A DNA stretch of 63,156 nucleotides, filler included, from Olpidium bornovanus S191 (lineage: Eukaryota > Fungi > Olpidiomycota), in assembly GCA_017911155.1 (NCBI GenBank). It is 27 parts of 27 records of this genome, joined end to end, with 100 filler letters (N's around TTAATTAATTAA, not from the genome) between each part and the next. Parts side by side here need not be neighbours in the genome. Positions count along the whole stretch, not along the records: positions 11,631 to 15,223 come from JAEFCI010005311.1; 26 more parts are not named here. One strand, 5' to 3'. Below are positions 2,388 to 15,563 of this stretch, one piece after another. How positions within the stretch are numbered: position 1 is the stretch's first letter; each line of letters begins with the position of its first letter. Made by a program: the position numbers and the translations under genes. Below the pieces are notes generated by a model. It was not told the origin of the DNA. It saw only the letters and a program-made list of their open reading frames with translations, and did not search any database.

Positions 2388-3607
2388 ATCTTGGGCATTG
2401 GCGACTTAACGGTTTCCCGTCAGCCTGTCTTGGTGGCAGAGGTTGATTGTTGGGTATGCCTTGGTGGAGACATTCCCCGTTGTTTAAAGATCAAATCCGT
2501 CAGTCATGGACGATGGACAAGGCCGAGCACGCTGCGGTGTCGCTCGAAGTCGGGCTGGGGGGGGGGGGGGGGGGGGGGAAAAGGGCCTTTGGCCATTGTG
2601 CCGGCGAGATTGTCGCGAGATGGGACAGCGATGACGGCGGTGCGACAAATCTAAACCGCTTCTCCGACGCACAGGTCCCCGCGGGTCGACACGCTTGCTC
2701 ACATTTTCGGACGCGGCACGCGTCCTTGGAGATCGCGATGGCGCGCGTAATTGCCCACGGTGGAGCGCGGGACGGGGAGGCACACGAACACACAGTCTCG
2801 GATATCTGCCGCGGATCCAGGCTGTTTCGGCTTCCGCGGAACCGGTGACGCTCAGAGTTTCCCTTTTTTTTTTTTCTTTCCTTTTTTTTTTATTTCTTCA
2901 GCGATTTATGTTTTCCATTCCGCTCTTGTCACCGTCGTCGTTTTCCGCCTTTTCCTTTTTTTTTCCCTCCCCTTTTATACGCGTTTTCTTCTTCCGCTCG
3001 TCGTCAGCTCAAGCGAGGGGAGGGGGGAGGGGGACGTTTGAGCTTCCTATCCGCCAGCGCATTTGCGCATTGGCACTCAGTATAAGCGACGTGAGACTGC
3101 GTCAGCACTTAAGACGGCAGCCACTAACAATGATCTGACTACGGGGGGGGGTGGGTTGATACCGTTCCCGTGTACAAATGTAGTCCGCGCAACGTTCGAA
3201 TGCACGACGGCACCACGAAGATAAACCCGCACCGGCAGACGTTCTGCCATTTCTCGGCCGCTGCCGGGACCCTGCAAATCCGTTGCGCAGGTGCGATTTG
3301 TTATGGAGCAGAACAAAAGCCCGAGATTTCCTAGGCCGTCCGTTTTCGCAGGAGCGGGAATCACTGTAAAACCAACGGAGGCCGTCCGTTTTTGCAGTAA
3401 GCGTGGTAAAAACCAACGGAAAGGAATTTTTCCACAGGCTTGGGGGAAAAATTACCGCCTTCGTCAAGGGCGGGGGCGGGGAGGGGGGGGGGGACGGGGG
3501 GATGATTAACCATAGAAATTCGAACCGGGTCCATTTCGGCGGGAAAGCGAGAATCAAATTCTTCTGACGCTCCCTGGAGCCCCCGGATGCGGCGGGGCGC
3601 GCCCCCG

Positions 3608-11630: not shown

Positions 11631-13029
11631 CCCACCGCTCGAGCTCGATGTACCGCCCGCTTCTCCTTATTGTTCGGGCCCCACCAATCGAGGGGGGCCC
11701 ATGTACGTAAAACCCCTGGTGCCCCCCCCTCTTCTAATAAACACAAGAAACCTTCGCCAGACACACCACCCACAACAACGGCGTCTGACAGCCGTTCTGC
11801 CGGTCTGCCAGAAGCCCCATTGACTTGATGTGCTTCTCGTGGGCTGTCTGCGGGAAAGCCTTCGTCAGTCCATCGTCGACCATGTTCGGCGAGCGCCCGT
11901 CCACCATCTCGATGGGCCTTTGGTTAATGACATCTCCGATGAAGTACCACCTCATTGCGATGTGCTTCATTCTTTGGTGGCTCACTGGTCTTTTGGCAAC
12001 GGCCTGGGGCCCCTGGCTATCGCAGGTTATCTTGATCGGTCGACTTTCTGTCCCTTTGAGCGCGGTGAGTAGCTCCTGCAACCACAGTGTTTCCTTAACT
12101 GCCTTGGCAAGAGTGATGTACTCCGCTCTGTGTTCGACATGGCGACAATGTCCTGCCATCGACTCGGTCAGCTCACAGCCGCCCCAGCAATCATGAAGAT
12201 CGATCCACTCGTCGACCTTCTCGTTGTGCAGCATTCGGTGTAGTCCACATCGCAGAATCCTTCAGACCACCCTTCCTGTTCATGGCCCCCATGCTGACGA
12301 TAGCATAGTGCCCATCCGGCAGTGTATTTCAGGTAGGTGATGACTCGCAGTCCGGCCTCCCAATCCTTCTCGGTTGGTGCTGTCTGGTGTCGTCCAAGGT
12401 AACCCAGGGCATAGGCAATGTCAGGCCGCGTGCCCATGGCAACAAAGAGCAATCCACCCACCATCTCTTTGTACCTGGTTGCATCGTCTCTTCCCTTCTT
12501 CGCCTTCCTCGCGCTGAGTGAGTTCCATCGGCATCTTCACGGCCTTCCTTGTCGTAACGCCGTATTTGTCAGCTAGCTCTCGTATGTACGCTCATTGATC
12601 AATACTTGCTCCTTCCGCATCTCGCCTGATCCTCAGACCGACGAGCAAGTTCAACGAGGTCAGGGTAAAGCTTTTCCCGATATCTCCCAGGATCTGGTCC
12701 ACACGTCCCTTGTCCTTTGCAAAGATAACGAGGCCATCAACCCAGGTGAGCACCCAAGCCAGCCCCGTGCTACTTTGCCTGATATAAGCTCCTTGATCCG
12801 CCGCCATCTGCTGGAATCCAAGCGAATCCAGAGTGCCTGGCAATTTGGTTGTCCAGGCGAGCCCTGCCTGCTTCAGGCCGTATAGCGGACGTCAAAGCCG
12901 CATTACTTTGTTGCCGTTGCTCTCGCTCTTAGGCAAGACTCCCTCCGGGATTCCGATGTAGACCTCTTCCTCCAGATCGCTGTTGAGGTAGGCCGCCTCG
13001 ACGTCTGCCACTCCCATCAGCCATCCATT
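11631..13029 (-). mobile_element. Degenerate Ty1/copia RT plus RNase H, with the start of a 3' LTR (about 11763-11631)
   Basis: GWLMGVADVEAAYLNSDLEEEVY, RPLYGLKQAG, LTWVDGLVIF, GTRPDIAYALGYLGR, RRSTSG, AEYITLAKAVKE, RMKHIAMRWYFI. Multiple stops and a frameshift. Confidence 0.92.
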
Positions 13030-13352
13030 TGTCACTGCCAGAGTGAGAGAGGATCAAGATATATGTGTAAGATCCCGATATATGTGTTCAGGATCCCAAG
13101 ATATATGTGTAAGATCAGGGGTAACCCTGGCGCTATCTCTGAGGGAGCAGAGCTCTGCGATGTGTAGCTAATTATAAAGAAGAGCACCAGTGGGGGTTTT
13201 ACGTACTTCGACCGGTCATGTGCCCATAGGGCATCAAGGTCGATTGGGAAGACAGTACAAGGAGATCGATTTGGGACTTGATTTCGAAGGAAGAAGAGGA
13301 TATCGGGGTTCGAAAGAAAACAAGGACGATCGATGGGGGTCGCTTCACTACA
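13030..13352. mobile_element. 323-bp LTR-like segment (TGTCA...CTACA) with no TSD
   Basis: TG...CA termini fall exactly where copia RT homology ends (13029) and gag homology begins (13353). It has internal repeats of GATATATGTG and a TATAAA. The flanks do not form a TSD. Confidence 0.65.
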
Positions 13353-14320
13353 ATAGGCAGCAACAGTCTTGAAGTCCATGATGCGTAGCGTAAGCCAGTA
13401 ATTCTGTGCACGCGGCAACAGAATCATGCGTTGGTTGTCGAAGCGGCCTCGGAGAGACTTCCACATGGCGGAGGGTGGCATGGGATCCAAGTGGCGACGA
13501 AGGAGGTGAAGAGCGTTGGCTTTCTTGGCGGGAGTCGTGGCCGCGGCAGCAGCGGCAGCGCCCAGAGTGGCTTCCACGGCGACGGCTTCAATGAGTCGGC
13601 GGCAGAGAGGGAGGTTTCCGCGTCTAGAGCCCACTGCAGGTAGTTGGACCCATCCACAGCAAAAAGGACAAATTCCACGGCAGCCAGTCGGAGCGTGGTA
13701 GTGGTCAAGGCTGGTGGTCGTCGTTGGGCTCGTTGGGCTCGGCGAGCGTGTTGGAGAGGCGACGACGGCGGAAAGGAGAGGCGATGACTGTGCGCGGCGG
13801 GCGGGGCACGACGGCGGAAAGGAGAGGCGATGACTGTGCGCGGCAGGCGGGGCGCGACAGCGGAAGGCGGCAATGGCGGCTACGGCGGGCGGAAGCGCGT
13901 CGGCGGGACGCGACGGCGGAAGCGCCGCCACGGCGGAGGCTATGGAGCGGCGTCGCGCGGCGGGCGGAAGCGCGGCAGAAACGGCGAGACGCGCGGTGTG
14001 CGGCGGCGGCTCGGCAGGGAGGCGCGCGGACAAGCGCGATGGCAAGCGGGCGAGCTTGGCGGCGTGTTTTTTTTGTTGTTGTTGTGGGAAAAATCTAATT
14101 CTACTGTAACATTAGATTTCCTGCGGTGGCGCTAGGGCGGTCGCGAAGCTTCTGCAGCGGGGCAAGAGGAGACCGGATGGCGTCTCGGAGGGCAGTGACG
14201 GCAGGGCGCGGGGGGGGAAGAGGGCAAAGCTCCGGGCGCCGGGCGAAGGCGCGGTTACTGGCAATGGTACTGCGGCGGCGGCGGCGGCGGGAGAGCTTTT
14301 TGGTGCTGATGACGTGTTGG
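13353..14320 (-). mobile_element. 5' part of a Bianca-like Ty1/copia: LTR end (CCAACA, 14320-14315), half-tRNA-Ile-type PBS (14314-14302), GC-rich leader and frameshifted gag (about 13680-13353)
   Basis: Gag reads VEFVLFAVDGSNYLQWALDAET...KANALHLLRRHL...MWKSLRGRFDNQRMILLPRAQNYWLTLRIMDFKTVAAY. PBS CGTCATCAGCAC directly follows CCAACA. Confidence 0.8.
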
Positions 14321-14491
14321 ATTTTACAGTATTGCGTTTTTGTCTGCATTCAGGGGAGACAGAGACGGGCCCGAGCGCGGGGAACTTTTTAACGCCTGCA
14401 ACAAATTCCGACCCAGAAAAAGGGGACAGGGGGGCGGACGGGGAGGGCTTGCCCCTCCCCTCCTTCCCCTCTCCTCGGGCCGAAGAACAAA

Positions 14492-15057
14492 ATGGCAGAC
14501 AAGGACGATGCCGCCGCCGCCGCCGCCGCCACCGCCACCACCACAGTTTGGCGGCTGCCCTTCTCCAAGCTGGTTCACCACCCCACGAGAGACATCCTCT
14601 TCCTCGCGTGCGGCGGCCATCTCCAGTGCTTGGATTCGAGGTATAAGCGAGAAGAAAGAAGCCAGAGAACTTCGCCAGGGCGTCGGTGCGGGAGCACCGT
14701 GGAGGGCTAGCGAGCCCGCGTTGGTCGCCCAGCCTTTTCTATTTTTTTTATTTTTATTCTTTTGTTATTTTTTTTCCGGCTTTTCGCGTCCGGAAAAACA
14801 ACGGGACTAAGCGAAATAGTCGCTCTTTTTCGCCGTGTCGAATTCAGATCTGGCGCACTCCTCGCGAGCACAATTGATACGACGAAGAACGGGCTCGTCT
14901 GCCGGACGACCGCCGGTCCGAACCCGGACACGCCTCACACCGGAATCATACGCACGCTGGCGATTTCGAACGACGGGCGGCGACTGGTGTCGAGCGGGGA
15001 GGACAAGCTGCTGAAAGTGTGGAGTACAGAGCGTGAACTCGAATGCCTAAGTTCCCG
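14492..15057 (+). CDS. TRM82: WD40 tRNA m7G46 methyltransferase subunit Trm82/WDR4-like, first exons (14492-14640, 14848-15057)
   Basis: WRLPFSKLVHHP...IIRTLAISNDGRRLVSSGEDKLLKVWS is a typical Trm82 N-terminal WD region. GT-AG intron. The 3' part was not found. Confidence 0.68.
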
Positions 15058-15563
15058 GTGAGGACGTACGGCGAGCAAAAAAAAAAAAAAAAAAAAAAAA
15101 ATCCGCGTCGGCGGCGCTCAATTTAGGGCCATAGCGTAAAAGGGCGTATTTTCCTGTTCGGCGCCAGGCCGGCGCTCTGAGCCTTCGGGCGATGATGACG
15201 ACGGGGCTGCCAGTGAGGCGGAGNNNNNNNNNNNNNNNNNNNNNNNNNNNNNNNNNNNNNNNNNNNNTTAATTAATTAANNNNNNNNNNNNNNNNNNNNN
15301 NNNNNNNNNNNNNNNNNNNNNNNCCCAGCACATGCGCGGGTGCAACCTCGGCTCCGTCTCCCGAAACCAAACAAGCCGGCGGACGTGAAAATTGCCTATT
15401 TCAAGTTTTCCGAGCGAGTGGGGGCTTCCACATCTTCCCCTCGCCTCCCCGCCCTCCAAATGGTGCGGTTCAGAAAAAACCGCATTAACGGCAATCTCCC
15501 TGTTTGTTGAAGTCATTACCATATATAAGAACTTTGGCCTGGTAGCCGTCATCTGTTAGCGGA

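Follow-up and report, generated by a model that had tools for sequence, protein, structure and literature searches.

A dead Bianca-type copia stump in the Olpidium bornovanus assembly suggests an ancient plant-to-fungus transfer

How does a retrotransposon fragment with the gag and the primer binding site (PBS) of a plant copia lineage come to lie beside a spliced gene in a contig assigned to a fungus? Bianca is described as a plant lineage, a lineage of the Ty1/copia elements said to go back to Wicker and Keller in 2007, and few retrotransposons use its primer, a half tRNA-Ile. Olpidium is the fungus closest to the terrestrial fungi and an obligate root-cell parasite, which lives naked inside root cells. 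The window, meaning the whole stretch of DNA that was analysed, holds 63,156 nucleotides of O. bornovanus, filler included. An initial annotation of its sequence reported a Bianca-like copia element in one contig, JAEFCI010005311.1, and offered two origins for it, an old lineage shared by fungi and plants or a horizontal transfer between the fungus and its host. Our reading, to which we give a probability of roughly 0.6, is that the locus carries a dead Bianca-type 5' stump in a GC-rich genome, most probably that of O. bornovanus or of a close relative, and that the ancestor of this stump was acquired from a plant long ago. The features of the locus are listed in Table 1.

Table 1. Features of the contig piece carrying the Bianca-type fragment, in positions of the window.
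Feature	Positions	Strand	Basis or remark
Whole piece (JAEFCI010005311.1)	11631..15223		GC 56-60%, without RIP signature
Putative polypurine tract (AGAAGAGGGGGGGG) and 3' LTR start of the RT-RNase H fragment	11631..11733	-	From position and sequence
Broken RT-RNase H of a different Ty1/copia lineage, 5'-truncated	11734..13035	-	RVT_2 from profile position 68
Filler separating the transposon fragments, 310 bp	13043..13352	.	21-nt x3 repeat; PPT/LTR-start-like piece
gag second piece, LIEAV...ANALHLLRRHLDPMPPSAMWKSLRGRFDNQRMILLPRAQNYWLTLRIMDFKTVAAY, other frame	13353..13595	-	Ends after ...FKTVAAY; homologue alignment
gag N-terminal piece (LRLAAVEFVLFAVDGSNYLQWALDAETSLSAA)	13596..13693	-	Translation, homologue alignment
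GC-rich leader, ~600 bp, PBS to gag	13694..14301	-	46-nt tandem duplication 13762-13853; block common to the L002 leader
PBS, CGTCATCAGCACC	14302..14314	-	13-mer directly after LTR end
5' LTR end of the Bianca-type fragment	14315..14401	-	...CCAACA at 14315; sequence read
WD40 gene exon 1	14492..14640	+	ATG 14492, GT donor 14641
WD40 gene exon 2	14848..15057	+	In-frame join; WD40 repeat

The stretch from 14401 to 13353 on the minus strand is a dead 5' stump, made up of an LTR end, the PBS, a leader and a gag of which ~110 of some 330 residues remain. The copia element of the initial annotation is thereby reduced to this stump; behind the gag cut-off at 13353 neither a protease (PR) nor an integrase (INT) is present, and the neighbouring pol is foreign. 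The minus-strand sequence terminating at 14315 reads ...CTGTAAAATCCAACA, and its AACA terminus aligns with the LTR ends of another Olpidium contig (L002) and of a Bianca-gag locus in Sorghum (L004). The LTR start is uncertain; if placed at the TGTTG at 14401, it would make the LTR 87 bp long, and at most ~177 bp are available before the ATG of the WD40 gene. The LTR limits are thus putative, because the piece 11631-15223 contains no direct repeat of LTR size and no second LTR. Taken as a whole, the locus consists of the remains of transposons of two or more lineages, lying 177 bp from the WD40 ATG in divergent orientation, and no function is likely for it beyond its position in the promoter region of that gene. 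Repeat-induced point mutation was considered as the cause of the decay and rejected, as the indices are not RIP-like.

The primer binding site is the first feature that connects the stump with Bianca. CCAACA-CGTCATCAGCAC, where the hyphen here and below marks the end of the LTR, is present as the initial annotation had described it, at 14320-14303 (13-mer 14314-14302), with the first gag motif ~650 bp downstream. The PBS immediately follows the LTR end (CA-CGTCATCAGCACC at 14316-14302). The 13-mer is the sole exact match in the window, and 0.06 sites with up to two mismatches are expected by chance. It corresponds with one mismatch to the half-tRNA-Ile primer site of Bianca, as had been proposed, and the same site is found in Sorghum L004 and Olpidium L002. 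The Sorghum locus reads ...TTTTATAACA-CGTTATCAGCACGATTGC ~1.2 kb upstream of its gag, and L002 reads ...TTTCGTAACA-CGTTATCAGCACCATTGCC ~600 bp upstream of DGSNYLSW, so that ...AACA-CGTTATCAGCAC is common to the two. The three-way alignment of this copy (14302-14314), L002 (780-792) and L004 (6817-6829) gives AACA-CGT(T/C)ATCAGCAC(C/G)A, with 12 of 13 PBS bases equal between this copy and L002 and 11 of 13 between this copy and L004. Directly 3' of the PBS, L002 and Sorghum both have ATTGC (AACA-CGTTATCAGCAC.ATTGC), and in this copy ~55 additional bases, among them a (GCC)n run, precede the leader block that it has in common with L002.

The PBS of this copy differs from that of L002 by a single T-to-C change, which lies opposite tRNA position 37 if the anticodon loop of eukaryotic tRNA-Ile is C-U-I-A-U-A-A, as we take it to be. 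Judged by its sequence, the PBS is the complement of the 3'-terminal bases of the tRNA-Ile(IAU) 5' half, placing a C opposite inosine-34 and a mismatch opposite position 37. Pairing with the tRNA of the host itself is a prediction, because the tRNA scan of the window and of all retrieved loci returned no tRNA-Ile gene. At PBS position 13, both Olpidium-type copies have a C and Sorghum has a G, which would fit a host-specific base at position 28 of tRNA-Ile. This leads to a prediction: the primer site must fit the anticodon stem of the host tRNA-Ile, with CGTTATCAGCACCA pairing with positions 27-40, which are predicted to read T-G-G-T-G-C-T-A-A-T-A-A-C-G in the tRNA-Ile(AAT) genes of Olpidium, and a C lying opposite I34. 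For plant tRNA-Ile(AAT) a C is expected at position 28, in keeping with the G of Sorghum at PBS position 13. Among plant Bianca elements, the 1/2tRNA-Ile PBS was found in 92% of 260 elements, with the first anticodon base A edited to I (PMC6317226).

The second connection is the gag. All four peptide strings quoted in the initial annotation are present on the minus strand. DGSNYLQWALDAE lies in a single frame beginning at 13654, and the other three, LRRHL, WKSLRGRFDNQRMILLPRA and LRIMDFKTV, are read in another frame at 13595-13353, so a frameshift close to 13595 divides the gag. Compared with its homologues it also lacks nine conserved residues after LRRHLD (a 27-nt deletion), and similarity to them ends after ...AAYCSE, so that only ~110 of the ~330 residues are left. 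Pfam gave no match for either of the two pieces, which are short and degenerate, and the assignment to a gag family therefore rests on homologues. We used the piece 13353-13604 as the query of a HMMER scan of 1.84 billion representative proteins and obtained 85 matches at E<=1e-3. After one low-complexity artefact was set aside, the top genuine gag matches had E-values of 2.6e-9 to 1e-7 and identities of 43-52%. They have the same order of motifs, namely F..L..DG.NYL.W, LRHHL, LW..LK.RFDHQ and LP.AR..W..LR..DFK.V..YN, and many of the homologues carry Retrotran_gag_2 (Pfam: PF14223), which makes this a copia-type gag. A second search with a profile built from twelve of the matches found 548 proteins, and all named ones among the 120 listed belong to angiosperms, in genera that include Chenopodium, Beta, Asparagus, Ipomoea, Medicago, Sorghum, Prunus and Rosa. 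Over both searches, with the profile search represented by its 120 listed matches, the named sequences with this gag come from angiosperms and Olpidium only.

The plant gag sequence which the initial annotation had given exists, as one protein (P0012) is nearly identical to it. The gag itself can be called Bianca-type, being homologous to plant Bianca gag at the identities given above and in the same motif order. Chance resemblance is ruled out by the gag E-values together with the PBS expectation of 0.06. A metagenome scan with the gag piece yielded two loci, both spurious and without gag.

The RT-RNase H fragment downstream of the stump is interrupted by two or more in-frame stops and two or more frameshifts, and its RT motif is VLTWVDGLVIF, i.e. 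WVDG where copia RTs read YVDD. Its putative 3' LTR start runs off the piece at 11631. The pol sequences of three elements with a Bianca-type gag, L003, L007 and L009 of Rosa, are 51-75% identical among themselves in the RT-RNase H region, whereas the fragment of this locus has 22-39% identity to them, with the exception of one stretch of 38-41 residues at 45-47%. Sorghum L004 has no usable pol and is absent from this comparison. The sole database relative of the RNase H open reading frame is another O. bornovanus contig (L005), with 55-56% amino acid identity and 72% nucleotide identity over 216 bp. To judge from these sequence identities, the RT-RNase H is another copia lineage and not the pol of the Bianca-type fragment. 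A single, internally deleted element reaching from gag to RNase H is ruled out, since the pol is from the other lineage. Contig L005 also carries a tRNA-Pro(GGG) gene at 116-189 on its minus strand.

Between the two fragments, positions 13055-13116 of the filler hold three tandem 21-nt units (CAAGATATATGTGTAAGATC), the middle copy at 70%. Another part of the filler, at ~13170-13215 on the plus strand, resembles a polypurine tract with an LTR start (..AAGAAGAGCACCAGTGGGGGTTTTACGTAC) and matches 11696-11740 on the minus strand, the 3' end of the RT-RNase H fragment, in opposite orientation. This hints at a third, inverted fragment of the RT-RNase H family.

On the other side of the stump, a spliced WD40-repeat gene starts on the plus strand at 14492, with one repeat in exon 2 (Pfam: PF00400, E 9.5e-7). 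Searches against the PDB gave generic WD40 matches for exon 2 and nothing for exon 1 with the start of exon 2. TRM82, the name under which the gene had been annotated, is a plausible candidate. Its first intron has T-rich tracts at 14735-14775 and its second intron a run of ~25 A at 15077-15101. A (GGC)n run at 14272-14290 in the transposon leader mirrors the (GCC)n run at 14510-14536, which encodes an alanine stretch of the WD40 gene.

The stump has relatives in the same assembly. Three of the gag matches (P0005, P0039 and P0065) are annotated proteins of GCA_017911155.1, from the contigs L002, L001 and L008. At least three other O. bornovanus contigs (L001, L002 and L008) thus carry diverged Bianca-type copies, at 59% GC. 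L002 has the exact site CGTTATCAGCACC and a nearly intact gag of 250 residues, and its layout is like that of this copy, with LTR end, PBS, GC-rich leader with tandem repeats and gag. The leader block CGGCGCCCG(G/T)AGCTTTGC(C/T)CTCT is common to both. L001 has gag, PR, INT and the first part of RT in Bianca order and adjoins a mitochondrial-carrier gene; the N-terminal part of its RT is 48-61% identical to elements with a plant-type gag, the 61% being to L007. In L008 (668-1600) and L002 (1462-2700) the gag runs in-frame into the protease (ALVDSGT.HTIL) without a spacer.

The tandem repeats of the L002 leader (907-1148) are GC-rich and have units of 24 and 66 nt, the repeat in this copy being two units of 46 nt, and the annotated gene model of L002 translates the leader as an alanine/proline-rich N-terminus. 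Following its truncated gag, L002 carries a reversed RNase H of another copia type (2981-3430, minus strand), which is 26-33% identical both to the RNase H of this locus and to the Bianca-type RNase H. Nested remains of copia elements seem to be plentiful in Olpidium contigs.

Whether these copies belong to the fungus has to be asked, as the O. bornovanus assembly was obtained from washings of cucumber roots as a metagenome bin defined by composition (PMC7865070). The bin was built by tetranucleotide composition and similarity filters, and contigs without fungal support were removed by its authors (PMC7865070). The gag of this copy and those of the other Olpidium contigs have a GC3 of 0.62-0.71, compared with 0.43-0.44 in Rosa and Sorghum, and the flanking WD40 exons have a GC3 of 0.72-0.84. 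Contamination with plant (cucumber) DNA is unlikely on this host-like GC and GC3, because at least three other O. bornovanus contigs carry copies with a host-like GC. The initial annotation had placed the element in a fungal contig, and the DNA is indeed not plant-like: GC is 57-60%, GC3 is 0.62-0.84, and the closest relatives of both transposon fragments are O. bornovanus contigs. By its composition and its relatives in the O. bornovanus bin, the host therefore does not look like the land plant that is expected for Bianca.

To place the gag among its relatives, we built a maximum likelihood tree of 48 sequences, unrooted and without an outgroup. This gag groups with L002 and L008 (support 97/87), L001 groups with four metagenome/SRA sequences (96/89), and the two groups together form a clade of eight members (98/91). 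This clade lies inside a clade of 15 members (98/96) made up of Olpidium and metagenome/SRA sequences and containing no named plant. A single node joins the 15-member clade to two plant clades. Because there is no outgroup, the tree cannot tell whether Olpidium is nested in plants, and plants could still be one clade excluding Olpidium. Monophyly of the Olpidium copies cannot be rejected (p-AU 0.40). Tree distances from Olpidium to plants are ~2.2-3.0, within the range of the plant-to-plant distances across the family, and the mutual gag identity of the Olpidium families is only ~40-50%.

The metagenome/SRA relatives L003, L006 and L010-L013 were retrieved from SRR10902180, ERZ25067493, ERZ24794440 and IMG 3300056851/3300056803, and may come from plants or something else. 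The GC3 of the gag of the nearest relatives ranges over 0.19-0.52, with 0.19-0.20 for L003 and L012/L013 versus 0.41-0.52 for L006 and L010/L011. With GC3 values this different among the nearest relatives, the lineage must live in several kinds of host.

What the stump is and how its family reached Olpidium are separate questions, and on the second the evidence suggests an ancient plant-to-fungus transfer, towards which we lean. The more detailed version, in which Bianca entered the root-cell parasite Olpidium long ago, changed PBS position 13 from G to C to suit the fungal tRNA-Ile, took on fungal composition and split into several families, is tentative, and we would put it at slightly less than an even chance. 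Counted for transfer were the conservation of the PBS region between Sorghum and Olpidium, the restriction of this gag to angiosperms and Olpidium among the named matches, tree distances from Olpidium to plants that do not exceed the largest ones between plants, and the RT of L001, which is closer to L007 than that of L003 is. Counted against our explanation were the single frame of gag and protease in L008, the PBS mismatch, the fact that the relatives in the assembly are diverged paralogues, the origin of the assembly as a metagenome bin, the wide GC3 range of the nearest gag relatives, and the tree, which would allow a plant clade excluding Olpidium and does not reject a single clade of the Olpidium copies.

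An old vertical lineage would account for several of the same observations. A Bianca-like clade primed by a half tRNA-Ile would then either predate the split of plants and fungi or be widespread in poorly sampled non-plant eukaryotes, Olpidium would have inherited it, and the metagenome/SRA relatives would represent other non-plant hosts. Such a history agrees with the well-supported clade (98/96) that includes the Olpidium copies and no named plant. The distance of this clade from the two plant clades is roughly the distance between those two, its members come from genomes whose composition varies widely (GC3 0.19-0.71), the splits among the Olpidium families are deep, and the fusion of gag and protease in L008 also fits a lineage long separate. 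Furthermore, the identity to Rosa over PR-INT drops from 51-60% in L007 to 36-49% in L012, L006 and L001. However, inheritance requires loss in nearly all other lineages, and neither search listed a named animal, protist or further fungus among its matches, though the searched collections include annotated fungal proteomes. Moreover, the N-terminal part of RT in L001 is closer to L007 (61%) than that of L003 is to L007 (51%), L007 is 75% identical to Rosa in the C-terminal part of RT and 69% in RNase H, and ...AACA-CGTTATCAGCAC.ATTGC is conserved between Sorghum and Olpidium. With these points in mind we regard vertical descent as unlikely.

Two further explanations carry less weight than vertical descent. 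The transposon part or the whole contig could come from a wrong bin, i.e. from another GC-rich eukaryote of the root washings such as a green alga or a protist, or the assembler could have joined the transposon to the WD40 gene. That the assembly is a metagenome bin with short contigs, that this piece of 3.6 kb is filled with repeats and that the WD40 gene received no fungal assignment in the PDB searches would all allow this. Yet the family is found on four independent contigs of the bin besides this one, all at 57-59% GC, one of them (L001) is linked to the mitochondrial-carrier gene, and the sole relative of the second copia lineage is in the same bin. With cucumber DNA itself excluded by composition, and contigs without fungal support removed by the authors of the assembly (PMC7865070), an error of binning or joining seems distinctly improbable. 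Recent transfer from the current host plant, one form of the exchange between parasite and host that the initial annotation had raised, is what the life of Olpidium in root cells and the abundance of the gag family in angiosperms might lead one to expect. It is not indicated by the data: there is no close plant copy, the best plant protein identities being ~40-50%, no nucleotide similarity outside the PBS and no plant copy above 80% nucleotide identity were seen, and no cucurbit is among the 120 listed profile matches. The Olpidium copies are also fully shifted to the GC of the host and already split into families, diverged to ~40-50% gag identity. We therefore think a recent origin highly improbable.

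Under the ancient transfer that we prefer, a plant-derived ancestor would have entered the Olpidium lineage long ago, and after its entry the GC content would have adapted, possibly PBS position 13 as well, and the element would have split into several families. In a live copy, reverse transcription would start from the 5' half of tRNA-Ile, whose anticodon AAU would be edited to IAU and which would be cleaved within the anticodon stem; the 3' end so formed would pair with the 13 bases directly after the LTR, as the sequence and the Bianca literature suggest. The copy described here has lost everything behind gag residue ~110 and carries the frameshift and the 27-nt deletion. It now lies next to an RT-RNase H that is just as dead and belongs to an unrelated copia lineage.

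The likeness to plant Bianca covers the gag family, the PBS for an edited half tRNA-Ile after an LTR ending in AACA, and the long leader, and in the relative L001 it extends to the order PR-INT-RT and to the RT identity of 48-61% to elements with a plant-type gag. The differences are the GC-rich and apparently fungal host, the C instead of G at PBS position 13, and in this copy also the T-to-C change in the loop part of the PBS. Besides, the gag falls into a clade without named plants, and this copy is without its own pol. In Bianca elements, gag and pol typically occupy two ORFs and the target duplication is 5 bp long (PMC6317226). A spacer separates the ORFs in 55% of the plant elements; L008 differs from the often separated ORFs of plant Bianca in having gag and protease in one frame.

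Copia elements of the Hemivirus type (Drosophila copia, yeast Ty5, Osser and Bryco) are likewise primed by a tRNA 5' half cut in the anticodon arm. Their primer is a half tRNA-iMet, whereas the tRNA here is Ile with inosine and not initiator Met, and the gag and RT lineages differ as well.

Resident copia elements are known from fungi, where the survey of Donnart et al. (2017, PMC5445492) treats the clades FunCo1-27 and GalEa. FunCo1 has a tRNA-Lys-like PBS and fungal GalEa a hairpin in place of a PBS, FunCo20 is the sole clade named as close to a plant clade (Tork), and Bianca is absent from the main text of this survey (PMC5445492). Being resident in a fungus is what the elements of this locus have in common with FunCo and GalEa, and the RT-RNase H fragment (13035-11734) may belong to one of these fungal copia clades.

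A precedent for transfer between the kingdoms is the movement of LTR retrotransposons from fungi to plants that Wang et al. reportedly described in 2021, in a direction opposite to the one proposed here. Our literature searches found no report linking Olpidium to retrotransposon transfer. The diverged, composition-adapted Bianca families in Olpidium are a concrete and testable candidate for a plant-to-fungus transposon transfer. If this reading is true, it would be a documented case of such a transfer tied to an intracellular parasitic lifestyle.
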